IMG/VR virus record: IMGVR_UViG_3300035698_010479
Coordinates: 164,459-228,458 of that record
Length of the DNA: 64,000 nt
Reading direction: 5' to 3' (one strand)
Shown: one piece after another, positions 1,512 to 47,450 of the stretch
How the letters are laid out: the number at the start of each line of letters is the position of its first letter
Position numbering within the stretch: the stretch's first letter is position 1
Translations under genes and position numbers: made by a program
The notes under the pieces: generated by a model
Database searches by the model: none
Told to the model about the DNA's origin: nothing
The model's input: the letters and a program-made list of their open reading frames with translations, nothing else

Positions 1512-1541
1512 TATTATATCCTCCGTTATTGAATTATTATA

Positions 1542-1829: not shown

Positions 1830-1831
1830 TG

Positions 1832-2260: not shown

Positions 2261-2271
2261 AAAAGCTCCAA

Positions 2272-2937: not shown

Positions 2938-2939
2938 AT

Positions 2940-3686: not shown

Positions 3687-3694
3687 AATTTATC

Positions 3695-4300: not shown

Positions 4301-4311
4301 TATAGTTCTCC

Positions 4312-7309: not shown

Positions 7310-7310
7310 A

Positions 7311-13300: not shown

Positions 13301-16300
13301 CTAATCCAGAAGCCATTTCCATACCGGCACCTAGATAGTCACCTATGGCTGCTCTTTCAGCAGCAAATCCTGCGGCGGCTACTGTACCTATGCCTGGTAT
13401 CTTTTTAAGGCCTATCTTACTTGCAGCCTTAGCTGTATATTTACCTATAGTGCCTTTTGTGTTACTTATAGCATCCCCTAAAAACATTTTAGTTACTTCA
13501 GAATTAAAACCAGCTTTCTTACCAAAAGAAGCTGCAATATCAGCTCCTTTTGTTTCAGCAGTAGCTTGGAAAGCTTTAAGCTTGTCTAAGGTATCAGCCC
13601 CAAACCCCGTGGCCTTACTGTAGCCTAATGGGTCTGATACTGCACCTTTTAAAAGAGTAGCTTGATAACGAGCTTTTTCTAAAGTATCCCCTAAAAACAT
13701 TTTAGTTACTTCAGAATTAAAACCAGCTTTCTTACCAAAAGAAGCTGCAATATCAGCTCCTTTTGTTTCAGCAGTAGCTTGGAAAGCTTTAAGCTTGTCT
13801 AATCTGTCATTAACGTAGCCGCCGTCAGCGTACATAACTGGTGGACCATTTTTTAAAGCGTCTAATACTGGTTTTAACTTTTTACGCTGTTCTTCAGTTA
13901 AAACTTCCTCACCTGCAGTAAGTAGGGATGGTTGTACATCACCTGTACCTGGTACTATTTGTTTAACGGTACCACCAGTAGAAAACTTTTGTATGAAACC
14001 TCCAGCAGCATTACCTGGAGTAGATTCAGAACTACCATTAACTGCATCTGTATTGTTTTTTAATGCTTCAACTAAGGCGTCCAATGCGCCTAAAGATGCT
14101 GTAGCTGCGTAATCAGCTGCTTTACCTGTAAATTCTCCGGCTGAAGACATTTTACCTTTTATATCTTCGTAAGACTCACCAGTTTTTATCTTAGCACCCT
14201 CATATACTTTTGAAGCTTCTTCTTTGAGGTTGACCTCCTCACCACGTGCCATTTTATCCGCAGAAGATTTAATAGCATCTTGGCTTGTGGTTTTAACATA
14301 CTCTTTTAACTCAGCTAATTTATCTTTTAAATCTTGTGCACCTTGATTAACAGATTCCTTTGTATTTTCGCGTAAGTCTGCATTTGGATTTTCTACTTTA
14401 CGTTTAAATTCTTTAGCTTTCCATTCAGCGTCAAATACAACGTTATCTTTTGTATTACTAAATGATTTTGATGCAGCTGAATATTTTGCATCTCTATCAT
14501 CATTTTCCTTATTAGGTGTTACCTTAAGGTCTAAGGTTTCTTCTGTAAACTGCTTCATAAAACCTTCAGAGGCATCCTTAAATCTACTAGCAGCTTTACC
14601 TTGTTTTAGTGTACTGAATATACCATCGTCTTTCATTGCTGCAGCAAATATCGTAACTTCTTTACCAAAATCTTTTACCAACGGTGGCAAATCATCACCG
14701 GTCATACCTTGATTTAATTTAGCTGCACCATAAACACCAAGAGCTGCCCCGCCTGCACCAATTCGTTTGATATTGTCTTCGGACATTCCTAAATTACGCG
14801 CTAAAAGCATACCGCCAGAAGTACCACCGGCAGCATATCGCATAGTACCATACATTCTAGCTTTCTTCTCTTCTGCAGCTTTGGCAGTTGTGAGTGACTC
14901 CATCTGAGGAGCATAGTCAATGAAGCCTACTTCGTTCTCTCTCTTTTTTAGATCTTGAATTTCTTTTTCATAATTTTCAATCTTCTTATTTGAGAAGTTG
15001 CTATTAAAGGCTTGGTATACACCAAAACCAGTAGCGGCTCCGGCTATATTTTTTGAGTTTAGTATTGTGCTCTCTTTTGACTTAGCTATATTTTCAGCTT
15101 GTATGCTCTGTACACCCTCTACAGTTTTATCGAAAGTAGGTGTACCTTTCTTGGTTACTAAACCAAACCAAGATTTTTCGTCAGGCATATTAGCTTTCAT
15201 TTCTGAAGATAATGTTTTGAAATCCAAACCACCAAAAGCTCTCTGAATAAGTTCTTCACCTTTGAAGTCGCCTGAACCAAATATACCACTATTTACTTTA
15301 TTAGTAGCACCAACTATACCCATACGGTCTACCAACTGCTTAGTAAGGTTATCTAAAGCAGCATTTGCTTTAGTAGTTTTATCAACATCTCCAGCAGAAG
15401 CTGCCTCATTTCTAATAGATGCTACCCGGTCTAATGCCTCGCTTAAACGTTCATTTTTAGTAATATTTGGCGATGGTAACATGAAATCCAATGCGTCCAT
15501 AAAACTAGTTTGCATAGCTTCAGAACCAGCCGTATCCGATAGATTATTTAGTATTTCATCTAATTTATCTACAGTTTTAGCAGTGTTCTCCGCAGTATTA
15601 CTAGTATCTATCTTAAGTTCTGCAATACCTAAATCACCTGTCTTAGCTACTATGTCTGTGTATTTAGCAAAATCCTTATCACCTATAGTCGAACCAAAAC
15701 CACCTGATAGATTTTTTATACTTTCTAGAGCTACTTTTGATCTTTCTACAGTATACATCTGTTCAGCTTTACCAGATTTTCTAATTTCTAACTCTTTAAG
15801 TTTTTTGGAGTTTTCTTCAAATTTAGAAGACTTTATTAATAATCGTTCTTGTGAAGATAAATCTGCCTTATTATATTTACCTAAATCTACGTTGGCTAAT
15901 GAAGCATCTCTACCTTTTAATAGACCAGAAGTTTCTTTTGATAAAGGAGATCTTGTCTTCTCTACTGCTATGTTTTCCTTAACAGCACGAGTATTAGCTT
16001 CCATAGTTTTAGTCAAATCAGCGAATACTGCACGATACTGTAAAACTACTTGATTATTTCTAAGTATATTTTGAAGCTTCATTAGAGACTCGTAAAGACC
16101 AGTCGACATTTCAACACTACTTGTGTCCAAACCGTCAAGATGCATTTTTTCCAACTGCTCTAAACTAGTTTTGTATTCATGGAGAGGTTTATTGTAATAT
16201 TTTTCAAAATCATCAGCCCAACCTTTCTGAAAAGGTGACTCACCAAAACCTTCAGTAGGATTAAAACCTTTATCTCCTTGAATAATAGTAGATGTACTAA

Positions 16301-19300
16301 TGTCGCTAAAGAAACGTTCTCCAAGATTGAAGTCTGTTTTGAACCCCTTCTTAGCTAGACCTACTAACCCTGCACTGGCACCAGTAATAATAGTACCTAA
16401 CGCATCTATTCTTTCGGACATATCTTGTTCTATAACTTTAGTTGGTAATATAGATTCAACTAAATCCTGCATATTATTATCAAATTTACGTTCGTCTATT
16501 TTTAAAGTCTTAGAGTTAAAGTAAGTAGCTACCCATTCAAATATACCATCTGAAGTTTCCTTAAGTTTTACAATGGCTTGTTGTCCTGCCATATTGAAAC
16601 CTTTGGCAGCGTCATCTGTAAAAGTAACTAGGTCACCGCTTAATACTTTACCCTCTCTTTTTGATACACCAGCAGTTTCTGTATTAGCTACACTAAGTGC
16701 TTTAGTAGCACCAAGATTATTACTTTCAGGGAACAAACGTTTCATTACCTCTGCTCCTAATACATCCTCTTTTGTAACCTTTCCTTTCACACCTTTAACA
16801 TTAAACTGGGGCTCAACGTCTATCATCAACTGATAGCCCGCCTGTAATTCGTCAGCACCCATTATACTAGCTACTTCGTCTTTACCAAAACCAGCTGTTG
16901 GTATGTTTGATAATGATCTTTTAAATTCAGAATATGTAACATTAAAAGTATCTTTAATCTTAGCCAATTTACCCTGTAGATTTTTTATATCGTCATCATA
17001 AACTGTGGACATGGGCGAAGCGTTTTTCTTTGCAACTAAATTATTAAGCTTTCCTGTAAGTATTTCAAGACTTTTAGCAGGTGCTACACTTATCTGATTA
17101 CTTATTAATTCACCTATAATAGGTATCTCTTTAGTAAGGTCTTTAAGTTCACTCTTCCACGTTTCAGAACCATCTGTTTTTGTTAGTGCCTCTATATGTC
17201 TAGCAGCAACACTAGAATCCTTTGCGGCTAAATCTCTAACTTTAGACCTCTCAAAAGTATTTAAAAGTGTTTGATAATTATCAGAAGTTCTTAGGATAAC
17301 ATTACCAAGCTTGTCGTAACCAGAGATCATATTTGTATTTTCTCTAGCTATTTTTTCACCTAATTTTAATGCGTCTGTCTGTACAGATGATAGGGCATTT
17401 AAAGGATTAACATAGGTACCAAGATACTTCTGTCTATCAGCAGTTGCTGGGTCTTCACTTTTAGCTACATCCTTTAACTTTCTCTTAATATCCCCTGTAG
17501 ATTTTTCAGTATCTCTGATACTAAACAAATCTGTCTCATCTTTTGTTATGGCACCATACATAGAATCAGCAAAATCTTTAGAAGATCTTGTCGTCTTCAT
17601 GAATTCAGCGCCAAGTGTTTTTATAGCGGGTGTCAACAAACCCAAAGTTAATAACATTGGTGCCATAGATTTTATAACACCTGCGTTATCTTTGGCCCAG
17701 TTTTTAAATATATCCCCACCGGCACCTAATTTTTTTGAAAACTCATCTATAAAGATACCAGCAGCAGCACCACCTAATCCAGCCACCTCTGTTGCCACAC
17801 CTAGGAAAGATGAAGCAACTTTACCTATACCTTTCATACCGCCTAAAGCAAATGCACCTTTTACGCCTTCTGATTTAGAATATTTTGATGCTGCCCCACC
17901 TGCCAAATCTTTATATGTAACATCTTCGTCTTTTCCATATTTACCACCGCCTAGCGATGATACAACGGCACTCAACCAAGAGCTACCTCTAACCATAGAT
18001 TGTCCAAAACCCTGACCAGCTTTACCAGTACCTTGTAAACCCCCTCCTACTGTGTCATTAAAAGATTTTCCAGCTGATACTAACATGTAAGCAGCCTTTC
18101 CTAAAGCTGATTCAAAATCTCTAATACCTTTACCCTGGCCTCTGCCTTCTACTTGGTCAGCTACTAATGTTTTCAAACCTCTTGAAGATGGGTCAGTAGC
18201 CCCTGCACCCATTATTTCAAAAGAAGCTGTTTTAAGTTCATCTTTTATAGAACCTATTAAATTACCAACTATAGGTGTACCACCAGAAAAGAAGTTAGAT
18301 ATAGTATCTAGAATTTTAGCGCCTTTAGATAAATAGGTAAATAACCCTAACGCGGCTACACTGGCTATCTTAAAAGAGGCTGGTATAGCAGAGACAGTTT
18401 CAGCCATAGCTCGCATACCCTGAAGACCAAACTTGGCTGCTGGGAAAGCTATTTTACCAAAAGCCAACTGTAATTCTAGGGAAGCTGACTTGGTCTGTTC
18501 AACTTGTTTCGAGTAAGTCTGCATTAACTCTGCATTTCTTCTTGAAGCCGAACCTTGTGAATTCATACTATCTTGCACGCCGTCCAATGCTTCCTGCCAG
18601 TTATCCATAAGAACAAGTAAAGAGTTATATTGTCTAGTACCACCTATAGCCTGTGCTACAGTTAGTTTCTGGGCACTATTTAACTCTTTCCATTTCTCTG
18701 CTAGGCCGCTAAGAATATCAAAGCCGCCACGTAACTCACCTGCACCGGTTATAGTAGGAACATTAAGCTTAGCCAACTCATTAGGTCCTTTCTCAGAAGA
18801 TAATCTTCTCATTATAAATCTCAAGGAAGTACCTACCTCTTTACCAGACTGTCTAGTAACAGAACCTATAGAGGCCACAATACCGTTTAACTGGTCAAAA
18901 GTAATACCAGCTGTGCTAGCAGCTGCTGCTGACTTTTTAATAGCTTCAGCCATATCACCTGCTGTAATAGCATGTTTAGATTCAACTTCAGACCATGAAT
19001 CTAAGAAACGCATAGATCTATCACCCTCAGTTCTAAACACCTTCATAGCTGCGGTAAGAGCTTCTGTAGCATCTTTTGCTTTTAACGTAGTAACGTTAGC
19101 AGCCAACATAGATGTGTTAGTTCTATCGGTAACTTCTGATTGAGACAAGCCCTGTTGCGCGTATACAACCATAGCATCTATAACACCAGTAGTACCGGTG
19201 CCATACTCTTTGGCCATACCAACAGCCGATTTCTGTAAACCGGAAAAATCTGTAGTTTTAGCTGGCATAACCATTTTTAATCTTGCCATACCTACTTCTA

Positions 19301-22300
19301 CTTCTGCTACTGTTTCAACTGCCTCTTTTAATTTATCTACGCCGCCATAAATTAATGAAGAAGCTGCGCCCCATTTTACAGCTCTCTCAATAGCCCCTAA
19401 GAAGCCTCTATTGGCACCAGCTAGAGAAGCTGCCATATCTTCTTGTTTTGCTGTAAAAATACCTACTGTTTGTCCTGCAGTATCTACAGACTCACTTAAT
19501 TTATGAAAAAGAACTCGTTGATTTTCGATAGGTTTACCAGAATCATCAAATACCTTAGCATCATAAGTATAACGCTCTCCTACCTTTGCACCACCCTCTT
19601 CGTTACCTTTACCGTAGTATTCCCGTAATTTTGATATATTGCGTTTATGTAAGTTAGCTTGCATTTCTGGATCGGCCCATTTAGGTACCTGTACAACACC
19701 CGTGTCACCCCATACACCTGGTCCACCAGGTTGTGTTTTTCTTCCCATATCAACTTTAGAGAGCTTATTTTCTGCGTCTTTTAAAAGTTTAATAGTAGTT
19801 TCTAAATTCTTACTTTCTACAGATAGTGGGCTATCAGAGACATTAAACTGTTTAAATAACTCTAAAGCACTTCTAAGTCTTGTTACTCTCTCTGCGGCAC
19901 CCTCAAAATTCCAGGCCTCAGCAATCTCAGGTCCTAGTCTTTCCAGTAATCTACCATTACTCATGAGAGCTATGGATTCATCGTTCATTTCTGTAAGGTC
20001 TTTTATAGCATTTCTTGCTTTGTCTGTAGGTGCAGTTATATTACCTCTATTTTTACCAGAAAGATCTCCTGTTATATCATCAAATACTTTTTTAAGTAAG
20101 TCACTATCTGGATCAGTTATATCACCTAAATCCCTATTTGATTTTCTTTGTATATCTACAGGAGCTTGATATACACCAGCTGCTTTAGCTATATCTGGAA
20201 AAGCCCAAACTTTATTAGCAGTATATATGTCGCTTCTTTTACCAGTATCATCCGTTATTTTTTTCTGTACAGCAGTAACAGCTGATTCTAGTCTATTATA
20301 AGCCTTACCTTCTTCATTACCACCCATACCTTTAACACTTTCATAAGCTATTTGGGCTTCCTCTGCCTTATCCATTAAATACCCTACTACAGCGTCTTTA
20401 TATAGCCGCCACGCAGTAGATATGTCTTTACCCGACATACCCTGTGCAGGATCTTGTTGATTCAATATACGGGCATTTTTAGTGAAATCTAGGAATTCTG
20501 ATACATCTATACCTCCACGGTCTTTTGCCCCTTCGATATAATCCTGAGCTTCTGTTGTAAGTTTCTTAGCTTCATTATTAAAATCCATACCCCTAGCTTC
20601 ATACAAAGATTTGGAAGCGTCCCTTAATAATTGTAAATTAGACAACTCTACTGACGGGCCTGTTCCTTCATGTGGTTGTAATGTTTGTGCTCTACCCGCA
20701 GCTGATTTACGTTGTTCTTCCGTAGTTTTAAATTTATCTACAGTTTGATTTATATTTCCTATACCTGAGTCATCATCTTTAAACGCACCTGTGGTATAAG
20801 CAGAATTACCTGTATTGCCAAGATTAGCGGAGTCTATTAATTGGCCTAATAATTTTACAGGGAATACTAGACTAGCATTAATACCTTCAATGAATACTGG
20901 AATTACTCCTCCAGTTGTTGGTATAGCTAGTTTAGTACCTTCTGGTGGACTAGGTGGTAAGTTGCCTCCTGTTACGCCTGTATTAAATGCTGGGTGTGGT
21001 GGCTCTTCACCTCTATTAGTATTGTACTCAACCCCAGTTTGATTTTGTGGTGTAATAGTAGGTATAACACTTGCTGATTCTTGAGTTTTAAATACTCCAA
21101 GAGATGCGTTAGCTATAGCATCTTTATCTTCAGTAACACCTATAGATATATCTCTTCCAGCTGTTGGTAATGGATCTTTTCTGTATCCTGATACTTCTGA
21201 AATTCTAGACATCCTGGCACGAAGTATTTCCAAGTCTCCTAGTTTATCATTATACTTAGAAATACTATCTATCTCTTCAGATTTAGCATTCTCAGGGATA
21301 TCCGATAATTTAGCTACATGTTCAGGAGAAGTAAGTATACTATTTTGCTTTCTATCACTTATAGGTGCTAAACCTAAAGTATTTTCCATGGAGCCTATTA
21401 ATTCTTTTATAGGTCCCATAGGTGCTTTACCTAAGGCAAACTGTTCACTAGTTGTTCCATATAGCAAACTACTAGCTTTAGAATAATCTTTTTGATTAAC
21501 ACCTTCTTTCCCTAGAGAATCAAAAGTCTTTACAAGCTCAGCGTAAGCGCCTTTACTTCTAAATGTCTTAGCTACTGAGTCCAAACCATCTTTAAATTGT
21601 TCATCGAAGGTATCATCTACTTGGAAACCACCAGTTCTAAATTTATACATAGGGTCATTAATATTAGTGACCATACTAGATACATCTATACCCTTAGGTG
21701 GGTTACCATCTTTAGGCTCATAACGTTTACTTAATATTTTATAAGCCACCTCAGCGCTCATTGGTTTTTCACTTTTAGCTTGAATACCCTTTATTGCTAA
21801 CTGTTCAATAGTACTTTGAAGATCTCTTAAAAACCCATCAAAGCCTAGATTCTTTACTAAAGTGTCAGTTAAGTCAGATCTATTCATATCAGAAACATTA
21901 CCTATGTTAGCACCTGTTGCTGCTACTTGATCTTTCAACTCTTGTGTAGAAAACTTACCAAAAGTATTTCTTAATGACTCCTCATTTATATTCTTAAACT
22001 TCTTTAAATCATCATAACTTTTATTTTTGTCAAGTTTCTGCATTAAGTCTGCTAAACCACTAGGACCTGTAGTAACACCTTTGACCAATTCACCAGCTAT
22101 TGGTCTCTCACCAGCATGTTTTACATCCATACCTTTTTGAATAGTAAATCTAAAGAACTCATTTAATTGAGTATTTCGTTCTCGTGTAACAAAGTCGTTA
22201 TCTATTTTTCCTGATTTAGTCTTATCAGAAAGAGCTATCTCACCTTCACCAAAACCACGTTTACTTTCATATGCACGCATAAGTTTAGTCATACTTTCAG

Positions 22301-25300
22301 TATCTGTACCAGTGTTTATTTTAAATAACTGGGCATTTACTGCTGTATCTAACTTCATATTAGCTAACTCTTCTTTCAAGTGTCCTTCAATTAAAGATTT
22401 GATATTTATATCTTTTATTGTGTCAAGCTGTAATGAAGCTGCTTGTGAAGCATCACCAAGATCTTCAATATCTTTTATAGAACTATCATCAAATTTGGCT
22501 CCTGCTTTATCAAAAATTGCTCTCATAACACGACTTACCGACTCACCGCCAGAAGTCATATTTAGATCTTGTTCTTTACTAGCCAAAATACCAACCTTCT
22601 CCTTAGGATTTAAATAAGATAAGTCTTCAGTTGTAAAGGGTTTATCAAGAAAAGAGTAACCTTTCGAGCTATCAAATTTTTTACTAAATGCTTGAGACAT
22701 ATAAGATAGTGGTAAATCACCTTGTGAAGGTTGTTTAGAATCATAGGAATAAAAATCACCAAATTTACCAGCTGTAGAGTCTATATCTTCTGTAAGCATT
22801 TTAAAATGCTTATAAATATCATTTCTAGCTTCAGATGTTTTAGCGGTATGGAGCTCAATCTGGTCGCCGTCATAATCAAGTTTCTGTGCATGAGCCACAT
22901 ATTTTGGAAGTACTGCAGATATCGCCTCGTTTAATCTATCAATTGTATTGGTTAACTCATCGGCTTTAGGGTCATCTCCGGTATCTCTTGCAGATTCTCT
23001 TTCTATAGACAAGGTTTTTACTTTATCTTTTATAGAATTATAAACCTCTTCAAAAGCACCCATATCCATCTCAGGTGTTCCAGGTACCATTAAGGAATCA
23101 TCCCCTATACCACCTGCAGTTTGTACAAGTTTAGCTTTGTAGGGTTTTAGTGAGGAAGTTCCAGTAAATGGAAAACGTACGCTCTCTATATAAGGAGATA
23201 ATTCTTCGTTAACATACCGCTTGATATCTTCAGCCCTGTCGCCACCGTTTACTTTTTTAGCAGTGTTTTCTAGTTTATCTGAGTAGACCAACAAATCTTT
23301 TAAAGAGCCCTCAACTTGATTACCTTTATCACCATTTAATAAAAAGCCTTTATCGGCATCGTATTTCTTGGTAAAATTTACTCTAAGTTTTTCAGCTAAC
23401 TTACTAGACACACCCAACTCATGTTGTTTTAATACGGGCATACCAATTTCTTTGTACTTAGCAACATTGTCTGAATGTTCTGCAGTAAGTTTGTCAATTT
23501 TAGAAATTTCACTAGTGAGGTCTAATCCATCGATCCCACGTAATGTTTCAGAAAAAGCCATCAAATCCTCTGTCTTATCTACTGTAGCATTTGTAGCTTT
23601 TGCTAAAACTGATGGAATATTTCTAGTAAAGAAAGTTCTAGCTACTGATCCTTTTTTACCTACTAAAGTTCTTTTTAAAGATTCTTGATAAGACTGTTTG
23701 GCTCTTTCGAGACCTTCCTGTCTTTTAATTACCTGATTGTTATATTTTTCTTCTTTATCAGCACCAGTACCATAACTAAACATACTATCTTTATCACCTA
23801 AGGCACTAGATATACCACTCATAACATCTAATCTAGTACTTGAATCAGTAGCTCTTGCCAGTACACTTGTGTCTGCTTCACCGGACATGCCAGTACCAAT
23901 GAGCATATTTTTCATTGCTGCAAGAGTCGTTGGTGAATTAAACCCTTCTTTAGTTCCTAAATGTTTTACGAAATCTGACTCACTTCCTTGAGCACTATCA
24001 AATCTACCACCAGTATTATATTTACTGTTATAAAAATTTTGTACAGATTTATTTAAAGAACCCTCATCTGTAGATAGTTTACCTTGGTCATCAAGTTTGT
24101 TGAGTAACTTAAGAAGATCTTGCTTTACAGCATTTACTTTGGTCACAGCTTCGGCAGTGTCGGTATTTTCTAAGCCAGTACTTCTACCCCTACTATCTTT
24201 AGAAAAATCCTTTGTAAATAATGAAGACATTGCGTTAGAAGTAGTACTACCAAAAGCACCAGACATACCAGTAATATCAGTATCTAACAACATACTTGAA
24301 TCTTTATTATAGAAGGATTCAAGAGATCTAGACTTGTCAATAACATCTTGTAGTTTACTACCTAGTTTTTTGATGCCATAAGAGCCAGCCTGCATAGGAT
24401 CAGCGTAAGTAGTTCTTGAAATAGACCTTGGTATATATAAATCTTCACCAGGTGCATCTTTACCTTTAGTGGATGGTATAACTGTTTTATAAGCCTCAGG
24501 TAGTTTATCCGTATCAAATATGGTACCTAGTAGTGAACCTGGGTCGCCTTCATTAAAAGTTTTTGTGGCATCCTTATTTACTGATTTTAGGTCCTTTATA
24601 TCTATTTGTTTAACTGATGCCAGTACACTGGTTTTATAGGCGTCATTTGTATTTACTAAATATGTAAGGATATTATCATAGTGCTCTGCCTGCTTATCAG
24701 TAAAATTTTCATTTAGACTCTTCATAAATGCCGAGTCTTCACCAAAAGTAGAAGTGTATGCGGCGTATGCTGGTATATTTAATTTTATACCTTTACTTAA
24801 GGAGTCGATAGCACCTTTAGACCACTCTTCTGTTTGAGTAGGTTCTTCCACAATAGATAGAAACTTTTCACCAACTAAACTTTTTCTTCTTTTATTTAGT
24901 TCGTCTACAACCTCTACATAGTAACTAGATTTCTTTTCTAGTTCTATCATAGCTTTTATAGCGTCTTGTGTACTTTTATCTTGTAATTTTTCTTTAGAAA
25001 ACATACTTGTTATCTTGCTTTGAAGTTCTTCATCTGTCTTACCTGACCCTGAAAAACCTAATGCCTTACTATATTTTGAAAATGATCCACCTGAAGCACC
25101 GGATATTAAACCAGTATTCTTATCATCAATAGTATTTTTTATTACAGTATTACCCTCACTACCTGCCAAGTTATTAGCAATCATCTCTAAAGGTTCGGTT
25201 TGTAGACCACGTTTGGCAGCACCATAAGAACTAATACGTACATCAATGGCTTTAGCTACTGTCTTGTCGCCAACATGCTTATTTTTTATCTGGTCTATAC

Positions 25301-28300
25301 CTTGTATATTTTGTGCTAAGTCCATATCTAATGCAGCAAAGGCCTTTTTAGCATTATCAAATACGGCTTTATTTTTTATAGCCTCTGTTTCTGTAACTAA
25401 GCCTTTTTCTACATCAGTAAAGATATCCAGTATAAACTTATTACCTGATTCCCTTAAATTCTGAGACAGATCGTCTATATTTACACCAGTACTAATACTA
25501 ATTCTTTCTTTTGTTTTATCATCCTGCTGACCTAATATATCAGCGGATAACTCTCCCATGGACTTAGGCATAAATGCTACACCTAATCCAGCTTTCTTTT
25601 GTTCGTCACCAGCTAAAACTTTAACATTAGATGTTTTATTAGCTGCTAATATATCACCTAAAGTAGATGGACTTGTAGGTGTTGTAGATACACCTTTTGA
25701 GCCATATCTAGTAGTAAGTTTTCTACCAAAGTGATTTAAGAATAGTTCAGCTAATTTTGCAGATTGTACTTCAACAGATGCACCCCTATTAGTGGTAACT
25801 TCATTTTTAACATCTGATATAAAAGCTTTATCTGGACGGCGCTTATACTTCTCATCGCGACCCATTATGGACATTATATTTCCAGTTACCTCTTCTATAT
25901 CGGAGTCTTTGATTGGACCTTCATTTATGGCGGAGGCTGTTCCTGAAGAAGCTTTGGGTCTTACAAGCTTTCGTACTGCAGTAGTAGCTGCATCAGCCAA
26001 CTTACCAGAAACTAGTATTTGATCTTCAAAGGTACCGGCAGTGTGGCGTAATTCCGCTAGGACGTTATAACCAATACCTGATTTACCAAATCTACCTGAT
26101 TGAATTACTTTATCTTCAGATTCAGATCTTAGTTTAGGAAATTCTGAAGTAACTCCCTGTGCTTTACCGAATAAACCAGTATCAAACCCTTTTGCAGAGG
26201 ATATACCTGAGATATTCCGACCTGTTTGTTGATATTCTAACGAAAAAGGTGCTATCTCACGTAAGTTACCTGTGTACATAGGGACTGTTCTGCCAGACCT
26301 ATTCATAGAATCAGGGGTTGTTTCCAAACTACTTGCAGGGGATTCGGGTAAACCTAGACTAGTAAGTTGTTTTGTAGTACCTGTATTTAATAAAGACTGT
26401 CTATACGCTACATCAGGAGATACGTCTTTAATGCCCTCTAGTTTACTAGCCTCATAAAATAATTCATTAGTTCTTCTATTAAAATTAGTTATAAATGCTT
26501 TTTTAGATTCATTACTAGAATTAAATTTTTTCTCTTCTTTAGAAACATCTTCATTAAAATTAGTTTGCCCTTCAGGTGTTAATAACTTAGAGCCTTCAGC
26601 ACCAATAGAATGGGCCTTTGAGTAGTTAAACATAGCAGATACTGTATCACCTTGATGCATACCACGTCTTGGTGCGTTTTGTTCAACTATAGGCATCATA
26701 CCTGATAGAGATGATAACGTTTTTTCGAAGTCGCCTATAGCACCTGTAGATGTGGCTATATTACCCACAATTTTGTCTATATCTTGTGTTGTGGCTCTTC
26801 CTATAGCATCATATACATTTGAAAAATTTAGAGAGTCTAGAGACTTAATAACTTTCGTGGCTGATAACCCAAGTGCGTCCATACTAGTCATAAACTCATC
26901 TATAGACTTAGTAGATTTTAAAGAATCATCAACCCTTTTAGATAATGCAGAAAACTCATCTGTAGCATTTAATTCATTTGAGGTGCCTTTAGTTATTCTC
27001 TGCTTTTCTACACTAATAGGTATTAAAGCCTTCTTGTAAAAAGAAGCTGCATCTTCTTTTGTGGCTGCAGCGCCGTTTTTAGAAGCTACACCCTTAAGTA
27101 GCAGTCTAGAGGCGTCTTCAAAAGTGTTAGCGGTGTCTGGTACTACATCACGTGGATCGGTATTAACTACTACACTTCTAGCTGCTTTAGCTAAACTTAA
27201 TATTTCAGGAGTTATATTTTCTTTATATGCTTCTTGTTTATCTTTTGGAAGTTTATGTAATAAATTAGTAGCATTTTTTAAATAGCCTTCAAAGGCCCTT
27301 TCATGACCAGATTTATACTCAGCAAGCTGTAAAGTAGACCTCTGACTACCATGTTGTGTCTCCAGTACGGTGCTACCAGTATTAGTTAATTTAGCAGCTG
27401 GAATCGCAATAGTGCGTTTGACTTCAGATAAAGTTTTTTGTATATCTGAAAATCCTACGGTTTTAGTAAATATATCTTTAAGAGAATCGTTAGATGTTTT
27501 TCCGAAAGCCTTAGCTATGTCATCAACAGAAGTAGACCCAATATTAGGTACACTTAATTGCTCAATGATATCCTTACCTAAAGCTGTACGTACCTCTGGA
27601 TTAAGTCCTTGAACACCACTTTCTTTAACATTTGTTTTTAACCACCCTGCAATCTCAGTTTTTAGTGTACTAGGTGTTTGGCCTTTATCTCTTAGTAGAT
27701 TTGTGGCAATTTTATCTGAGTAGGTTTTTAAAAGTTCTTTAGGGGTACCTTCCTGTTTACCAGTTAAACTTCTCAGTTTCTTCATGTCCACAACATCCAT
27801 AGCCCATTCACGTCCTCTGAGGTTGAAGGCTTTATTATGTGAACTACCAGTACCTTCATTCTCCACTACTTTCCAATCAGTGAATTGACGCTTTCCTGGC
27901 TGTGGGCGTAATCCTTCAGAAACCTTAGTATATATAGTTTGCTGTAGTTTATCCAAAGACACTGATAGTTTGGACATGTTATCATAAACTTTAAGTTCAT
28001 ACTCGTTCTTAGTATTCTCTGGAGCAGCATATTTTATATTGGGTTGTATAAATTTTTCAGAATACTTTACGCTAACCGCTTTTTCGGCATTAGTTAGAGA
28101 GTAGTTACTTTTGGAGGCATCATTTTTAAACTTTTCTACTACAGAGGCTAAAGAACTTTGTCCTGTAGTATTTTTATCAATAGCTTGTATAAGTTTGGAG
28201 TTGTCTTGTTTAGTACCACCTTTACCTACGATTGCAACTATGTTATTAACTTCTTTAACCAAGTCGCCTATAGCAGTGGAATCTTGAATAGTAGTTACAC

Positions 28301-29732
28301 GACGATCACTTTTTACAAATTTACTTATATTATCATTAGAAAGTGATACTTGAAGGTCTGGTACTTTACCTAGCTTTGCAAAATCGTGTTCAATAGAAAG
28401 TACATCACTCTTCTTTGTCTTATCATTTGTTATAAAAGAAGATTCCTTTCTATCAAGAACGGAGTTCATAGAAACACGTGTACTCTCAAGTTCTGCTACT
28501 AGTTTTTCTAATCTACTTCTCTGAGCTTCAACACCAGTACGATTACTTTCTGGTAACTTAGAAGCCTCGGATCTGTCGGGTAAATTACTAAGTTCTTTAG
28601 TTTTGTTATATTGTTCCCGGCCTAAAGATCCCTTTACATAATCAAATCCACGTACTAATTTAGTTAGTTCTTCTTGAAGAGCCTTTATAGGTGTAGTAAT
28701 GATATCTAAAGATATTCCACTTTTATTTAGCTCGTTTATCTTACCTTGTAATTGTTCTAGTCTATTATATATACTTGGGATATCATCTCTAGCTATGTCA
28801 ATATTTAGCTTTATTACGTCTTGGTCAACAAGCTTATCTAATTTACTAGTAGCTTTTGTAGTATCCGCCTCTACAGTTATAGTAGTAGATTTATCTTTAA
28901 AAGTTTCTGTGATTGTCTTTTCTGCTTGGGCCGTATCAACAACAATATTCAGAGATATTTCTTGTTCAAGGCGATCACGAACCTGTTTTATGTTTGCATT
29001 TAAGCTCTTATCAATCATTGATAAGCTAGCAACAGCACCAATAGACTTATCATGGTCAATCTTAGCTAGTGGCGCTTTTATAGTTTTATAACTTTCTTTA
29101 GTATTAGATAACTTTGTAAGTAAACTTTCAAGCATAGTTATAAGTTTGCTTGAGTCAGGTGTTTCTTTATTACTCTCTGCTACAAACACCTTGGCCATAT
29201 TAGGTAGAACAGATAAATTCTTTGAAATAGCTGATAACTCTTGTACTACTTTAGTCATATCAGATATTTCTTTCTTAGATACAGTAGATGCGGCTGTTTT
29301 TACAGAACTGGTTACAGCCGTTTTTTCGTTGGAAACTTTATTAGCCTTAAAGAAGTTTTGAAGTTGTTCAGTAAGAATGGTTTTTACAGTAGCTGTTACC
29401 TCTTTCTGTATCTCTCTACTATTTACAGGAGTATCGCCTACAGAAGATTTATTGACTATATCTACAATAGCGTCTTTAACATCTCTGGCTAGAGACTTAG
29501 AAAAAGCTGAATTATCTTTAGATATACCTTTAGAATCTCCTGGCAAACTACTAGATATAGCTTTAGATATAGCCCCACTTAAAGTGCTTTCTAAAGTTTT
29601 CATAGAGGAGTTTATGGAACTTTCAATGGCGTTACTAATACCGGAAACATCAAAATCACTGTTAGTATTAGCGCCCTTGTTATTGTCAGAATATGATTGG
29701 ATCTTGATTATGTGCTCGCTTGTTCCAGCCAA
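7311..29732 (-). CDS. giant tail tape measure protein fused to a two-barrel (beta/beta-prime-like) RNA polymerase
   Basis: 7473 aa, TTG start with AGGAGG 8 nt upstream, sited between tail chaperones and tail-tip genes. TP901-type TMP core at aa ~3440-3760. RNAP motifs: FEDQILVS aa1235, GRKLTTRYGSKGV aa1336, GKKG aa2025, RFP aa2186, DYDGD aa2286. Confidence 0.92.
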   Translation of the reverse strand: MAGTSEHIIKIQSYSDNNKGANTNSDFDVSGISNAIESSINSSMKTLESTLSGAISKAISSSLPGDSKGISKDNSAFSKSLARDVKDAIVDIVNKSSVGDTPVNSREIQKEVTATVKTILTEQLQNFFKANKVSNEKTAVTSSVKTAASTVSKKEISDMTKVVQELSAISKNLSVLPNMAKVFVAESNKETPDSSKLITMLESLLTKLSNTKESYKTIKAPLAKIDHDKSIGAVASLSMIDKSLNANIKQVRDRLEQEISLNIVVDTAQAEKTITETFKDKSTTITVEADTTKATSKLDKLVDQDVIKLNIDIARDDIPSIYNRLEQLQGKINELNKSGISLDIITTPIKALQEELTKLVRGFDYVKGSLGREQYNKTKELSNLPDRSEASKLPESNRTGVEAQRSRLEKLVAELESTRVSMNSVLDRKESSFITNDKTKKSDVLSIEHDFAKLGKVPDLQVSLSNDNISKFVKSDRRVTTIQDSTAIGDLVKEVNNIVAIVGKGGTKQDNSKLIQAIDKNTTGQSSLASVVEKFKNDASKSNYSLTNAEKAVSVKYSEKFIQPNIKYAAPENTKNEYELKVYDNMSKLSVSLDKLQQTIYTKVSEGLRPQPGKRQFTDWKVVENEGTGSSHNKAFNLRGREWAMDVVDMKKLRSLTGKQEGTPKELLKTYSDKIATNLLRDKGQTPSTLKTEIAGWLKTNVKESGVQGLNPEVRTALGKDIIEQLSVPNIGSTSVDDIAKAFGKTSNDSLKDIFTKTVGFSDIQKTLSEVKRTIAIPAAKLTNTGSTVLETQHGSQRSTLQLAEYKSGHERAFEGYLKNATNLLHKLPKDKQEAYKENITPEILSLAKAARSVVVNTDPRDVVPDTANTFEDASRLLLKGVASKNGAAATKEDAASFYKKALIPISVEKQRITKGTSNELNATDEFSALSKRVDDSLKSTKSIDEFMTSMDALGLSATKVIKSLDSLNFSNVYDAIGRATTQDIDKIVGNIATSTGAIGDFEKTLSSLSGMMPIVEQNAPRRGMHQGDTVSAMFNYSKAHSIGAEGSKLLTPEGQTNFNEDVSKEEKKFNSSNESKKAFITNFNRRTNELFYEASKLEGIKDVSPDVAYRQSLLNTGTTKQLTSLGLPESPASSLETTPDSMNRSGRTVPMYTGNLREIAPFSLEYQQTGRNISGISSAKGFDTGLFGKAQGVTSEFPKLRSESEDKVIQSGRFGKSGIGYNVLAELRHTAGTFEDQILVSGKLADAATTAVRKLVRPKASSGTASAINEGPIKDSDIEEVTGNIMSIMGRDEKYKRRPDKAFISDVKNEVTTNRGASVEVQSAKLAELFLNHFGRKLTTRYGSKGVSTTPTSPSTLGDILAANKTSNVKVLAGDEQKKAGLGVAFMPKSMGELSADILGQQDDKTKERISISTGVNIDDLSQNLRESGNKFILDIFTDVEKGLVTETEAIKNKAVFDNAKKAFAALDMDLAQNIQGIDQIKNKHVGDKTVAKAIDVRISSYGAAKRGLQTEPLEMIANNLAGSEGNTVIKNTIDDKNTGLISGASGGSFSKYSKALGFSGSGKTDEELQSKITSMFSKEKLQDKSTQDAIKAMIELEKKSSYYVEVVDELNKRRKSLVGEKFLSIVEEPTQTEEWSKGAIDSLSKGIKLNIPAYAAYTSTFGEDSAFMKSLNENFTDKQAEHYDNILTYLVNTNDAYKTSVLASVKQIDIKDLKSVNKDATKTFNEGDPGSLLGTIFDTDKLPEAYKTVIPSTKGKDAPGEDLYIPRSISRTTYADPMQAGSYGIKKLGSKLQDVIDKSRSLESFYNKDSSMLLDTDITGMSGAFGSTTSNAMSSLFTKDFSKDSRGRSTGLENTDTAEAVTKVNAVKQDLLKLLNKLDDQGKLSTDEGSLNKSVQNFYNSKYNTGGRFDSAQGSESDFVKHLGTKEGFNSPTTLAAMKNMLIGTGMSGEADTSVLARATDSSTRLDVMSGISSALGDKDSMFSYGTGADKEEKYNNQVIKRQEGLERAKQSYQESLKRTLVGKKGSVARTFFTRNIPSVLAKATNATVDKTEDLMAFSETLRGIDGLDLTSEISKIDKLTAEHSDNVAKYKEIGMPVLKQHELGVSSKLAEKLRVNFTKKYDADKGFLLNGDKGNQVEGSLKDLLVYSDKLENTAKKVNGGDRAEDIKRYVNEELSPYIESVRFPFTGTSSLKPYKAKLVQTAGGIGDDSLMVPGTPEMDMGAFEEVYNSIKDKVKTLSIERESARDTGDDPKADELTNTIDRLNEAISAVLPKYVAHAQKLDYDGDQIELHTAKTSEARNDIYKHFKMLTEDIDSTAGKFGDFYSYDSKQPSQGDLPLSYMSQAFSKKFDSSKGYSFLDKPFTTEDLSYLNPKEKVGILASKEQDLNMTSGGESVSRVMRAIFDKAGAKFDDSSIKDIEDLGDASQAASLQLDTIKDINIKSLIEGHLKEELANMKLDTAVNAQLFKINTGTDTESMTKLMRAYESKRGFGEGEIALSDKTKSGKIDNDFVTRERNTQLNEFFRFTIQKGMDVKHAGERPIAGELVKGVTTGPSGLADLMQKLDKNKSYDDLKKFKNINEESLRNTFGKFSTQELKDQVAATGANIGNVSDMNRSDLTDTLVKNLGFDGFLRDLQSTIEQLAIKGIQAKSEKPMSAEVAYKILSKRYEPKDGNPPKGIDVSSMVTNINDPMYKFRTGGFQVDDTFDEQFKDGLDSVAKTFRSKGAYAELVKTFDSLGKEGVNQKDYSKASSLLYGTTSEQFALGKAPMGPIKELIGSMENTLGLAPISDRKQNSILTSPEHVAKLSDIPENAKSEEIDSISKYNDKLGDLEILRARMSRISEVSGYRKDPLPTAGRDISIGVTEDKDAIANASLGVFKTQESASVIPTITPQNQTGVEYNTNRGEEPPHPAFNTGVTGGNLPPSPPEGTKLAIPTTGGVIPVFIEGINASLVFPVKLLGQLIDSANLGNTGNSAYTTGAFKDDDSGIGNINQTVDKFKTTEEQRKSAAGRAQTLQPHEGTGPSVELSNLQLLRDASKSLYEARGMDFNNEAKKLTTEAQDYIEGAKDRGGIDVSEFLDFTKNARILNQQDPAQGMSGKDISTAWRLYKDAVVGYLMDKAEEAQIAYESVKGMGGNEEGKAYNRLESAVTAVQKKITDDTGKRSDIYTANKVWAFPDIAKAAGVYQAPVDIQRKSNRDLGDITDPDSDLLKKVFDDITGDLSGKNRGNITAPTDKARNAIKDLTEMNDESIALMSNGRLLERLGPEIAEAWNFEGAAERVTRLRSALELFKQFNVSDSPLSVESKNLETTIKLLKDAENKLSKVDMGRKTQPGGPGVWGDTGVVQVPKWADPEMQANLHKRNISKLREYYGKGNEEGGAKVGERYTYDAKVFDDSGKPIENQRVLFHKLSESVDTAGQTVGIFTAKQEDMAASLAGANRGFLGAIERAVKWGAASSLIYGGVDKLKEAVETVAEVEVGMARLKMVMPAKTTDFSGLQKSAVGMAKEYGTGTTGVIDAMVVYAQQGLSQSEVTDRTNTSMLAANVTTLKAKDATEALTAAMKVFRTEGDRSMRFLDSWSEVESKHAITAGDMAEAIKKSAAAASTAGITFDQLNGIVASIGSVTRQSGKEVGTSLRFIMRRLSSEKGPNELAKLNVPTITGAGELRGGFDILSGLAEKWKELNSAQKLTVAQAIGGTRQYNSLLVLMDNWQEALDGVQDSMNSQGSASRRNAELMQTYSKQVEQTKSASLELQLAFGKIAFPAAKFGLQGMRAMAETVSAIPASFKIASVAALGLFTYLSKGAKILDTISNFFSGGTPIVGNLIGSIKDELKTASFEIMGAGATDPSSRGLKTLVADQVEGRGQGKGIRDFESALGKAAYMLVSAGKSFNDTVGGGLQGTGKAGQGFGQSMVRGSSWLSAVVSSLGGGKYGKDEDVTYKDLAGGAASKYSKSEGVKGAFALGGMKGIGKVASSFLGVATEVAGLGGAAAGIFIDEFSKKLGAGGDIFKNWAKDNAGVIKSMAPMLLTLGLLTPAIKTLGAEFMKTTRSSKDFADSMYGAITKDETDLFSIRDTEKSTGDIKRKLKDVAKSEDPATADRQKYLGTYVNPLNALSSVQTDALKLGEKIARENTNMISGYDKLGNVILRTSDNYQTLLNTFERSKVRDLAAKDSSVAARHIEALTKTDGSETWKSELKDLTKEIPIIGELISNQISVAPAKSLEILTGKLNNLVAKKNASPMSTVYDDDIKNLQGKLAKIKDTFNVTYSEFKRSLSNIPTAGFGKDEVASIMGADELQAGYQLMIDVEPQFNVKGVKGKVTKEDVLGAEVMKRLFPESNNLGATKALSVANTETAGVSKREGKVLSGDLVTFTDDAAKGFNMAGQQAIVKLKETSDGIFEWVATYFNSKTLKIDERKFDNNMQDLVESILPTKVIEQDMSERIDALGTIITGASAGLVGLAKKGFKTDFNLGERFFSDISTSTIIQGDKGFNPTEGFGESPFQKGWADDFEKYYNKPLHEYKTSLEQLEKMHLDGLDTSSVEMSTGLYESLMKLQNILRNNQVVLQYRAVFADLTKTMEANTRAVKENIAVEKTRSPLSKETSGLLKGRDASLANVDLGKYNKADLSSQERLLIKSSKFEENSKKLKELEIRKSGKAEQMYTVERSKVALESIKNLSGGFGSTIGDKDFAKYTDIVAKTGDLGIAELKIDTSNTAENTAKTVDKLDEILNNLSDTAGSEAMQTSFMDALDFMLPSPNITKNERLSEALDRVASIRNEAASAGDVDKTTKANAALDNLTKQLVDRMGIVGATNKVNSGIFGSGDFKGEELIQRAFGGLDFKTLSSEMKANMPDEKSWFGLVTKKGTPTFDKTVEGVQSIQAENIAKSKESTILNSKNIAGAATGFGVYQAFNSNFSNKKIENYEKEIQDLKKRENEVGFIDYAPQMESLTTAKAAEEKKARMYGTMRYAAGGTSGGMLLARNLGMSEDNIKRIGAGGAALGVYGAAKLNQGMTGDDLPPLVKDFGKEVTIFAAAMKDDGIFSTLKQGKAASRFKDASEGFMKQFTEETLDLKVTPNKENDDRDAKYSAASKSFSNTKDNVVFDAEWKAKEFKRKVENPNADLRENTKESVNQGAQDLKDKLAELKEYVKTTSQDAIKSSADKMARGEEVNLKEEASKVYEGAKIKTGESYEDIKGKMSSAGEFTGKAADYAATASLGALDALVEALKNNTDAVNGSSESTPGNAAGGFIQKFSTGGTVKQIVPGTGDVQPSLLTAGEEVLTEEQRKKLKPVLDALKNGPPVMYADGGYVNDRLDKLKAFQATAETKGADIAASFGKKAGFNSEVTKMFLGDTLEKARYQATLLKGAVSDPLGYSKATGFGADTLDKLKAFQATAETKGADIAASFGKKAGFNSEVTKMFLGDAISNTKGTIGKYTAKAASKIGLKKIPGIGTVAAAGFAAERAAIGDYLGAGMEMASGLVSNIPGVGTAASFLIDGALMGKDFISSKAPNLEDIKNTKAGLQDKLSKMSKLKYSAIAAGSLGAYSLLNNEEESYASGGFISTGLKGLLKLTGTGVGLGIGAAASGLAEIGKILQNKNLVTGARKTTAAIKATATASPSAYEAFKKANPKMYEALATGTLGAAGGSLLYANLNEDEDIYDKYNDSLAGHAGGGTVGSGMIKGPGTGTSDSINMNDVPDGSFIVPSKYAQNAKEQIEFASGGSAKSDIRVSNGEYFISPEDASKIGETNLKKLQHGQKTSFANGGVVRGYTNGGEVSSLPASVVSLDQDSVNRFAQAAAAASAFTLSRYAAEKSADKTKATDLGNLAEGENTAIYDAILANSEAAQKVYDTTRNPMADGNNGAEVPTEEVSRIFDTAKEYNKALDDTAAIESSLISEHDKYNKEIATLKEEMRKADIAEKFLMQIEAMNKSIADANFAENFKNSLKLGTGAFEGFSGPKDLNIETKGVTDLNSMELYQLVQKRKEDQKGIYGPTDWAEDFKNFSLRVINSVNPEDSLNHKYRGQNVLKEYSALEDKKVGLTSRMNAGLQNRSQATDADELEKWDDFLKDIGKELENVTEKQDGYRVALHSVIKETDAAARTIENIKNKLATITSVRTDALYNVNNRGMGGRLRGATNDISLIPNSVDSISNTQYAHLQASAGMKDTMSQYKVNTNLYDGQLQKVKELEDTLNNLKLEDPQTSNNGYFGKGAQASIVSGDIVTKTLALAAAKKELEETGHALEVASMKMSNFMEATDAAKQFETAIVSVKTSMYAASMGASGLQSKLDSLYGGSSPFAPQQIDINQREDFARNGGGTLISGKSNQFDIEKAQYLKTMHGQSTSPQEWMQAKLGNANLPKKQEEYKQHEERLRSSQAIRDAIRPGQDYQAAIASSRIKIQERIADNNYTDFDTAGVSKNKESDRSAIVSLDNGYKKLNDLMNSLVDRGTPINEQDFNSMREVSSQTTESLGGASKDELKNALSSVSSNPVVSALNAQTDKIINTLLTSSQLVEALGVLKVDKSPTFMEELSKVGDILSRSFSDPTGLASGGTVGSIIRGAGTGTSDDISMAVPSGSYVIQAKYAQATKSRLNSFAKGGQVPINVSNGELLLTPEEVAKIGGTATADAFNSGRLPDDATIRSSWSKEDYNNHGFANEKDYSQQIGGLETPMIDPVDILSGFGSAALFKNVVSKATNVTTKSGLSGYLKEAQGIMGTNLDVSKYTKEIMNNKALLKEVMSKGQAIYGDSASLINIVTRTGPIGLKNMVDSIATKGFAKGGSVDEQEKLRKQLFDMYSKDAIVSYPSEPKQVYTTDVYKDNKGVWQNNTSLTPSNQNTSGVSLKERVAASLDNSTSSNNIINSEETTEQLINKISSLAKFRDSNSIDSRGLHLSLQDANLTHAVTPEEEEGKKQLTDEITKLGNISRGNTAYYENAMKEPTTKLIAKQIDATRAGASVNLPTKRWSDIKGLTVMNGTGKGTPFVADNLNKGPDALSELQKRVNLASADTPERKAYLSTLDDKGRESFFKSLSITDRNVKTLASAGGMAAVATNQKANFMMSEAFQHSSNFESFYLDKRKSDMAKLVDEKYGKGTFKKRSERNIDGLRTYNEQLNGFTTRAGNDPDFYKKYMQSMSGTIPEKMLIEIISRLTKQKQGEILTRGDNTKNNFLAGGDVNSNNLSRQVRHNGGVAHKSGSYFLEGGEVILDKNYFGNNTTQNNSASINTQAPAKQTVEIEGLDAFEKIVSNLEKSLNKLTNIKIEGIDKLTDIKIEGLSDLRDIKIEGLSDLKDIKIEGLSELKNIKIEGINDLHDIKITGIDSIRDIKVEGLEKLANIRIENIDQLKNISITGLENLRDIKILGLDELKDINVKTSSVGADMGDMFASTLKDFDSRVGNLEKSSADQISLIKTTVKDIVAELPVLDINQKSEIAGLKKDMLATSSEVSGLTSSIITLKQVLNVSINELKESQNNAMTHIYSIKRV
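7659..7988 (-). repeat. 10 tandem 33-bp (11-aa) units, consensus IKIEGL.DL.D, near the TMP C-terminus
   Basis: Read directly: IKIEGIDKLTD IKIEGLSDLRD IKIEGLSDLKD IKIEGLSELKN IKIEGINDLHD ... IKILGLDELKD. Confidence 0.9.
13473..13802. repeat. perfect 117-bp direct repeat (13473-13589 and 13686-13802), in frame inside the TMP
   Basis: Base-by-base identical; both copies encode DKLKAFQATAETKGADIAASFGKKAGFNSEVTKMFLGD; offset 213 bp. Confidence 0.92.
18500..19420 (-). other. tape-measure core domain (PhageMin_Tail/TP901-like); boundaries approximate
   Basis: GMAKEYG..TTGVIDAMVVYAQQG...SMLAANV...ATEALTAAM...LDSWSEV..KHAITAGDMAEAIKK.AAAA..AGITFDQLNG...SGKEVGTSLRFIMRRL is the typical TMP core pattern. 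Confidence 0.88.
22000..26400 (-). other. embedded RNA polymerase module (beta-like DPBB then beta-prime-like DPBB); boundaries approximate
   Basis: Collinear counterparts of RpoB and RpoC conserved blocks; catalytic DYDGD at 22863-22877. Confidence 0.88.
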
Positions 29733-46982: not shown

Positions 46983-47450
46983 TTATAATTTTACCCCCAA
47001 TGCGTGACATACTGTATCAAAGTCTAAATCAATATCATCACACTGTTGTCTAAGTTCACATATATCCTCAGGGCTATTAAGAATTTGGCCCATATGTGGG
47101 TTGTCTTCTACACTGATATTATATTCTATTGATATTTCTCTGTAACGTTTAGAATTAAGAGATCTTTCGGTACAAATATTTGTTGTAGCATCGTAATCAG
47201 TTTTAATTTTATTAAACCAATTTCTAACTTCAACTGAATTTTTTATTTCTTGTTTGTACTGTAGATATAGCTCATCAGATAGAGGGTACATATTTCTGAA
47301 ATATTGCATTAGTGTTTTTGATATTTTTTCTTTTGTGGATTCTGAGTGATGTTGACCCTTTTTAGAATCACTAATTGCCTGTTTACTCACATCACTTAAT
47401 CTAAAACCTAGTGGCCTGCCTCTACCTCTTGTTGGTTCACTCTCCATCAA
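46983..47450 (-). CDS. NUMOD3-motif DNA-binding protein
   Basis: G.RLSDVSKQAISDSKKG.HHSESTKEKISK matches tandem NUMOD3 repeats; no nuclease motif seen. Confidence 0.6.
   Translation of the reverse strand: MMESEPTRGRGRPLGFRLSDVSKQAISDSKKGQHHSESTKEKISKTLMQYFRNMYPLSDELYLQYKQEIKNSVEVRNWFNKIKTDYDATTNICTERSLNSKRYREISIEYNISVEDNPHMGQILNSPEDICELRQQCDDIDLDFDTVCHALGVKL

Follow-up and report, generated by a model that had tools for sequence, protein, structure and literature searches.

The tape measure protein (TMP) of an uncultured phage, encoded in the final 64 kb of the 228,458-bp IMG/VR contig IMGVR_UViG_3300035698_010479 (this 64-kb stretch, the whole of the DNA that was analysed, is hereafter called the window), probably carries in its N-terminal half a single-chain two-barrel DNA-dependent RNA polymerase (RNAP), which would be delivered at infection for early transcription. 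The protein is the product of a giant open reading frame (ORF), in which the RNAP region (residues ~936-2385) lies N-terminal to the TMP core (residues ~3363-4450) on one polypeptide, and its relatives share this layout. It is well supported that both catalytic barrels are present, in beta-then-beta' order, inside a genuine TMP, and it is plausible that they belong to a complete polymerase; by analogy with a characterised system of Thermus phages, the polymerase is likely to be active, packaged in the virion and injected into the host. The family represents a lineage, both new and widespread, of an arrangement that is known from one phage genus. An initial annotation of the window had placed a complete two-barrel RNAP inside the TMP at positions 22000-26400. 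Both barrels are borne out by three independent lines, namely residue invariance, profile comparisons and predicted folds, but the word complete goes too far, since neither a bridge helix nor a trigger loop was identified and confidence was low in the models of the beta-like barrel. The proposed interval is too narrow, the conserved block spanning positions ~20328-27827.

The giant protein shows the hallmarks of a TMP in its core. The PF10145 domain was found at residues 3505-3698 with a Pfam E-value of 2.1e-25 and a score of 90 bits, where the cut-off is 33. Residues ~3363-4450 match eleven tape measure families of PHROG (best E 2e-75), and tblastn reaches proteins that are annotated as tape measures in phages of Bacillus, Lactococcus and Staphylococcus (E 5e-29). 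Two Gly/Ala-rich hydrophobic segments come shortly after the PF10145 domain. Furthermore, the gene stands at the position expected for a tape measure gene, since the terminase and major capsid genes lie upstream of it in one co-directional module. The TTG start codon is supported by the agreement of the N-terminus with the family consensus start (MA....I.I). Extrapolating from the ~4,300 residues that follow the RNAP, the tail of the window phage may be ~0.6-0.9 micrometres long.

All ten motif strings listed in the initial annotation were located in the giant ORF, one copy each and in RpoB-then-RpoC order, at most two residues away from the positions first given. The motif IDVRISSYGAAKRG begins at residue 1496 rather than 1497, LVGKKGSVARTFF at 2023 rather than 2025 and VRFP at 2185 rather than 2186, and DYDGD lies exactly where it had been placed. 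This order agrees with that of Escherichia coli RpoB (NFEDS 811, GDK..NKGV 1063, PSRMN 1104), and then with the RpoC series LYRRVIN 268, KGKQGRFR 332, LRLHQCGL 361, NRAP 424 and NADFDGDQ 458. On the beta side, hhalign put GRKLTTRYGSKGV on RpoB residues 1063-1076 (GDKMAGRHGNKGV), and the stretch of the stand-alone RNAP paralogues (described below) that is equivalent to the IDVRISSYGAAKRG motif aligns with RpoB 1049-1116. The first beta'-like block, for which the family consensus is FYVPG..AR.TYPEP...RRLQ.VIN, falls inside the hhalign match to the alignment of these stand-alone RNAPs (alignment A3), and LKQHELGV, the next motif after LVGKKGSVARTFF, is found at residue 2101.

The conservation of these motifs was assessed in an alignment of 30 sequences over residues 1186-2385 (alignment A2), whose mean column identity is 35%. 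Its invariant columns include E1236, D1237, R1337, K1338, R1342, G1344, K1346, G1347 and R1508 on the beta side, and R2186, P2188, D2286, D2288, G2289, D2290 and H2295 on the beta' side, and it is at the counterparts of these positions that cellular beta and beta' have their catalytic residues. The motif matches are therefore more than chance, as the catalytic residues are invariant across relatives that are otherwise only ~35% identical. The pattern D[FY]DGD occurs once in each of the 33 giant homologues found first (33/33), at ~2,000-2,500 residues from the N-terminus. In a conservation profile over 39 relatives, which begins at residue 586, conservation over the whole protein is highest at residues 1136-2385, and residues 586-635 are poorly conserved (identity 0.26, occupancy 0.55). 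The beta'/Rpb1-like half covers residues ~1765-2385, and conservation carries on to residue ~3135. Within this downstream region, a block at residues 2524-2542, which has the invariant pattern NE..R...Q.G.D.K..G at 2524-2541 (alignment A4), is a candidate bridge-helix-type element.

When residues 1001-2700 of the window protein were used as a single query, phmmer against the PDB, tblastn against 50,697 phage records and a search of the PHROGs returned nothing; because direct searches with the window sequence alone fail in this way, the link to RNAPs runs through the relatives. Three related phage contigs code for free single-chain proteins of ~1,040-1,180 residues that, judging by their sequences, are clearly RNAPs. 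They bear the motifs NFEDQ, (R)HGNKGV, ERFP and LDFDGD, and they match Pfam Rpb2_6 (5.3e-11) and Rpb1_2 (8.3e-5), the beta subunits in the PDB (3e-7) and RpoB residues 1049-1116 (3.6e-6). Both halves of the giant protein are homologous to these stand-alone RNAPs and share their motif set: the beta-like half (residues ~1187-1804) matches alignment A3 with an hhalign E-value of 1.3e-15 (probability 98.6%), and the beta'-like half (residues 2006-2314) matches the stand-alone RNAPs at 1.2e-8 (probability 95.6%), with a profile built from 87 long (at least 2,000 residues) fused-type proteins only. The fused form differs from the stand-alone RNAPs, which are free-standing, contain 9-18 cysteines each and lack the three insertions of the beta' barrel. 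A fused copy and a stand-alone RNAP (loci L046 and L050) were found together on one contig, IMGVR_UViG_3300028364_000014. In addition, RNA_pol_Rpb1_2 is the sole Pfam family to recur in the fused region, where 17 of the 30 members match it (best E 6e-4). The beta'-like half also ties directly, if weakly, to cellular beta', with hhalign E-values of 0.012 for the DYDGD region against RpoC 456-480 and of 0.0012, when a deeper profile was used, against RpoC 448-482.

Two structures were predicted for the polymerase region. Model 1, an AlphaFold model of residues 1186-2385, has a mean predicted local distance difference test score (pLDDT) of 73.7; model 2 (mbf9b0aac5158), made by AF2 for residues 936-1835 with 250 extra N-terminal residues and with the paralogues added to the alignment, has a mean pLDDT of 69.5. 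In the Foldseek search of model 2 against the PDB, the best 50 matches were all second-largest RNAP subunits, among them bacterial beta, Rpb2, A135 and the homologues of vaccinia and African swine fever virus; 12 of them have an E-value of 0.001 or lower, and the best one has 9.8e-5 (probability 1.0). For model 1, largest subunits (Rpb1/beta') account for 38 of the 50 best PDB matches. Among viral predicted structures nothing significant was found with model 1. Its top viral match (E 0.014, 1,278 aligned columns) is BFVD A0A8S5SD80_1, which comes from Siphoviridae sp. ctnpt50 and bears the label 'Minor tail protein'; this may be a relative in UniProt whose annotation goes no further than that of a tail protein.

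The giant protein is also peculiar in its amino acid composition, as its 7,473 residues include no cysteine, compared with an average of 1.16% in the window's 33 other ORFs. Over the 81 giant relatives, 29 cysteines were counted in 549,349 residues; 65 of the 81 proteins have none. P23-45 gp96, the TMP of a Thermus phage that carries an RNAP (see below), has zero cysteines as well, and the polymerase module is affected only when it is fused, given the 9-18 cysteines of each stand-alone paralogue. We infer that this exclusion fits a disulfide-free chain that is stored in the virion and passed through the envelope.

The family is large. A word-indexed search gave 33 giant homologues of 5,000-8,000 residues, 47 loci carrying the same region came out of an IMG/VR scan, and an exhaustive HMMER search of 1.84 billion representatives of 50%-identity clusters gave 145 matches. 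Over all searches there are 81 distinct homologues of at least 4,000 residues, which come from independent samples, and the contigs of the family reach 318 kb. More distant giants of 4,000-5,500 residues retain FEDQ, G.K..T.R.G.KG and NLDFDGD; in one of them, P0133 (4,651 residues), the triad is at residue 1388 and is followed by PF10145 at 2531-2725. From these distant giants it follows that TMP-RNAP fusions span several deep lineages. As the initial annotation had anticipated, automatic annotation sees a TMP alone: the relatives are labelled 'TP901 family phage tail tape measure protein' by their sources, and mostly only PF10145 is precomputed for them. A few have further precomputed Pfam families: P0030 has PF00929, an RNase_T-type exonuclease family, P0033 has several families of the helix-hairpin-helix kind, and P0019 has PF14449. 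From such assignments P0030 and P0033 appear to bear nucleic-acid modules of other kinds on this scaffold. Full-text searches of the literature turned up no paper describing the family. Among 185,579 species genomes, just two short contigs from metagenome-assembled genomes carry it; these contigs of 16-20 kb, CAZRJS010000021.1 and JAUVDT010000035.1, are binned in Woesearchaeota and Gammaproteobacteria, and are most likely mis-binned phage fragments that hold no host information. The similarities of the terminase and the TMP hint, weakly, at low-GC Gram-positive phages.

The closest known parallel is P23-45 gp96 (5,002 residues), the N-terminal part of which is an active, promoter-specific, DNA-dependent virion RNAP fused to the TMP (PDB 8H2M/8H2N; Chaban et al. 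2024, PMC10770324). Besides P23-45, such a fusion has been noted only in P74-26, G20c and TSP4 (PMC10770324). Like gp96, the giant protein is a very long chain (7,473 residues) with a two-barrel RNAP and a D[FY]DGD triad N-terminal to the TMP core, and, in a likeness to P23-45 gp64, at least one related contig of the giant family also has a separate RNAP paralogue of ~1,100 residues. However, no similarity to gp96 could be detected: phmmer found nothing, the best blastp E-value was 0.17, hhalign of the family profile A2 against gp96 residues 1-1200 gave an E-value of 0.2 in a non-catalytic stretch and nothing at the catalytic sites, and 8H2M/8H2N were not returned when the PDB was searched with the family profile. 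Only the stand-alone paralogues reach the beta' barrel of gp96 (2e-6). Membership in the gp96 sequence family was rejected on these grounds, and the initial suggestion of a different lineage holds. The two proteins differ in build as well. The FED and G.K....G.KG motifs, both invariant in the giant family, are missing from gp96, and the triad of gp96 lies at residue 779 in an active fragment of residues 327-1124, whereas that of the giant protein lies at residue 2286, inside a conserved block of ~2,500 residues that follows a 635-residue leader. Their settings are also unlike, since P23-45 is a Thermus phage and the window phage is low in GC (~34%), has a genome of at least 228 kb and is known from metagenomes only. 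As the layout is shared and the similarity is not detectable, the giant protein would function like gp96 yet stand outside its sequence family.

The giant protein has the same ordered catalytic motifs as cellular beta (RpoB/Rpb2) and beta' (RpoC/Rpb1), and its first half matches beta/Rpb2 chains in predicted fold, but it is one chain instead of two, it lacks alpha and omega partners, and it is fused to a virion protein. The FED and GRK motifs are 100 residues apart in the giant protein and 252 in E. coli, so that no flap-sized insertion is present between them, while other insertions occur elsewhere. The phiKZ-type enzymes and gp66 of phi14:2, a crAss-like phage, are virion-delivered two-barrel RNAPs, gp66 being a single chain within a large protein (PMC10770324). 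No PDB match to 6VR4, the entry for gp66, was obtained with either the family profile or the single sequence, and membership in the crAss gp66 family was rejected. The phiKZ protein PHIKZ071 is reached at an E-value of 0.026 by the stand-alone paralogues only, and the phiKZ enzymes, unlike the giant protein, consist of several subunits and are not parts of a TMP.

By analogy with P23-45 gp96, the giant protein would be built into the lumen of the tail, and at infection it would be expelled C-terminus first, forming a conduit through the envelope. The RNAP module would come last, just ahead of the DNA, would fold at the cytoplasmic end, and would transcribe the first-entering genes without need for the host RNAP; it may also help to draw in the long genome. 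The lack of cysteine would fit a protein that travels unfolded along an oxidising route. Several observations weigh against this reading. A module of more than 250 kDa would have to be stored in, or pass through, a tail tube that is a few nanometres wide. Searches of the region after the barrels (alignment A4, including residues 2524-2542) against RpoC and the stand-alone RNAPs gave no significant match, and neither the bridge helix nor the trigger loop was identified by them. The HMMER search of the PDB with the family profile found no RNAP, just coiled-coil noise, and the direct hhalign matches to E. coli RpoB and RpoC span only 14-35 columns (E 0.22 to 0.0012), short matches which fall exactly on GDKMAGRHGNKGV of RpoB and NADFDGDQ of RpoC. 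The beta-like barrel has a pLDDT below 55 in both models, and in model 1, which covers both barrels, its residues (1-200 of the model) are below 50. Predicted folds, which had been put forward in the initial annotation as a check, answer for the beta half, all of whose 50 best matches are beta/Rpb2, but not for the beta' half, which has no individually significant match (best E for model 1, 0.33). Furthermore, no cultured phage in the 50,697-record collection has the family; no repeated promoter-like motif was found at 46-64 kb of the window; and no second RNAP is found in the window, where tblastn of the stand-alone RNAPs returns the fused copy only. IMG/VR pattern scans turned up no stand-alone RNAP on the contig of the window either. 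A two-polymerase cascade in the style of P23-45 is unsupported for the window phage, because neither a second RNAP nor an early-promoter motif was found in the window.

Other explanations for the polymerase region have to be set against early transcription by a delivered RNAP. It is conceivable, although unlikely, that an active polymerase serves mainly a mechanical purpose, being anchored to the conduit and using transcription to haul in a very long genome, with early expression as a secondary effect. In phage T7, transcription pulls in part of the genome. A genome of at least 228 kb and an enzyme that is covalently tethered to the presumed conduit would suit such a role, and the P23-45 authors propose that transcription is concomitant with DNA translocation (PMC10770324). 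However, this role is compatible with early transcription, and the sequence does not separate the two. Less probable is a catalytically dead relic with a structural task; it could serve as a plug, as a chaperone of assembly or as a part of the length ruler. The large helical insertions in the barrels relative to the stand-alone paralogues and the low-confidence model of the beta-like barrel point in this direction, but a relic would be expected to lose its catalytic residues, whereas all the residues that perform the chemistry in cellular RNAPs are invariant at ~35% identity and are kept in far more distant giants, and nowhere is the protein more conserved than in the RNAP block.

The module could also make RNA for other ends, by priming the replication of the phage DNA or by copying RNA in the manner of the eukaryotic QDE-1, which has been grouped with the phage single-chain RNAPs (PMC10770324). 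Two-barrel enzymes do include RNA-dependent members, and the sequence does not tell which template is used; nevertheless, the beta-like motifs are nearest to those of DNA-dependent cellular beta subunits, and the sole characterised TMP fusion is a promoter-specific DNA-dependent RNAP, so we consider such roles slightly less probable still than a dead relic. As for motifs that arose by chance, or separate genes joined by an assembly or frameshift artefact, nothing but the rarity of ORFs of this length would suggest them, and the likelihood of either is negligible: the uninterrupted layout in 81 proteins of at least 4,000 residues and in 47 IMG/VR loci rules out an artefact, and the concurrence of invariance, profile links and fold links rules out chance motifs.

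Table 1. Features of the giant ORF, genes upstream of it in the window, and stand-alone RNAPs of related contigs
Feature	Residues	Position	Strand	Remarks
Giant ORF, TMP with embedded RNAP	7,473 in total	7311..29732	-	TTG start
N-terminal region	1-635	27828..29732	-	No Pfam or PHROG match
Conserved block holding the RNAP module	636-3135	20328..27827	-	Conservation profile, 39 relatives
Beta/Rpb2-like half	936-1835	24228..26927	-	AF2 model and Foldseek, hhalign
Beta-barrel motif ..TFEDQILVS (FED block)	1219-1242	26007..26078	-	E1236, D1237 invariant; cf. RpoB NFEDS 811
Beta-barrel motif GRKLTTRYGSKGV	from 1336	25689..25727	-	K1338, K1346 invariant
IDVRISSYGAAKRG motif	from 1496	25206..25247	-	R1508 invariant; counterpart of RpoB VDIVLNPLGVPSR block
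First beta'-like block, LYIPRSISR...KLQDVID	1765 (LYIPRSISR), 1793 (KLQDVID)	24336..24440	-	cf. RpoC LPPDLRP..LYRRVIN
Beta'-type barrel region (GKKGS, LKQHELGV, VRFP, DYDGD)	2006-2314	22791..23717	-	Three helical insertions
VRFP	2185	23169..23180	-	R2186, P2188 invariant; counterpart of RpoC NRAP
DYDGD, presumed metal-binding aspartate triad	2286-2290	22863..22877	-	D2286, D2288, D2290 invariant
Block NE..RF.IQKGMDVKHAGE	2524-2542	22107..22163	-	Invariant, downstream of the barrels; alignment A4
Tape measure core	~3363-4450	16383..19646	-	PHROG, tblastn
PhageMin_Tail domain PF10145	3505-3698	18639..19220	-	Pfam
Hydrophobic Gly/Ala-rich segment	3780-3798	18339..18395	-	Kyte-Doolittle, 19-residue window >1.6
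Hydrophobic Gly/Ala-rich segment	3977-3995	17748..17804	-	Kyte-Doolittle, 19-residue window >1.6
C-terminal extension (~3,000 residues)	4451-7473	7314..16382	-	Only phrog_11341 (unknown function) and weak leucine-rich-repeat matches
33/66-nt tandem repeat encoding leucine-rich-repeat-like units	near C-terminus	7815..7991	-	Tandem Repeats Finder
Major capsid protein		37933..39003	-	Upstream of the giant gene, co-directional
Large terminase	1,004 in total	43473..46484	-	Upstream of the giant gene, co-directional
NUMOD3-motif protein		46986..47450	-	Upstream of the structural module
HD-domain protein		47771..48343	-	Upstream of the structural module
Deoxynucleoside monophosphate kinase		49063..49662	-	Upstream of the structural module
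Phage lysozyme		50449..50958	-	Upstream of the structural module
ClpP-type protease		51214..51789	-	Upstream of the structural module
PhoH-like ATPase		57129..58427	-	Upstream of the structural module
Stand-alone RNAPs	~1,000-1,180 in total	L050:9260..12793; L049:6233..9349; L048:4625..7918		P0134 to P0162 group

The remaining features of the giant ORF and the genes around it are collected in Table 1. The long C-terminal extension, in which no RNAP similarity was found, is presumed to comprise the tail-length ruler and the tail-tip end. The Pfam families LRR_RPS2 and LRR_EndoS match residues ~7223-7339, both under their cut-offs, and these leucine-rich-repeat-like units sit at the extreme C-terminus, the end of a TMP that is expected at the tail tip. 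The window has a GC content of ~34%, nearly all of its ORFs are on the minus strand, and no tRNA gene was found in its 64 kb; the tail genes flanking the giant ORF are without family matches. The terminase is split at residues ~90-501 by an intein, which carries a LAGLIDADG homing endonuclease (PF14528, 3.5e-23; PF14890, 4e-7), and its own domains pick up again at residue ~510, past the intein.

The TMP-fused virion RNAP has so far rested on one genus of Thermus phages. Since a family that shows no detectable sequence relationship to that case, with 145 cluster representatives, presents the same solution, the fusion is a recurring strategy and not a curiosity. Because the fused barrels of the giant family keep cell-like motifs, they are easier than gp96 to align and to mutate rationally, and the free, cysteine-rich paralogues and the fused, cysteine-free form offer a natural comparison for the demands that ejection makes on a protein. 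A broader reading, which in our estimate falls a little short of an even chance, is that, in a large clade of giant phages that are uncultured, the TMPs are covalent scaffolds for enzyme delivery, in which a cell-type beta-beta' fused RNAP arose or was captured independently of the Thermus case, is threaded through the tail in a cysteine-free, unfolded state, refolds in the host and starts the infection without the host RNAP. As annotation pipelines label such proteins only as TMPs, early transcription that is independent of the host RNAP would have been overlooked in surveys of giant phages.

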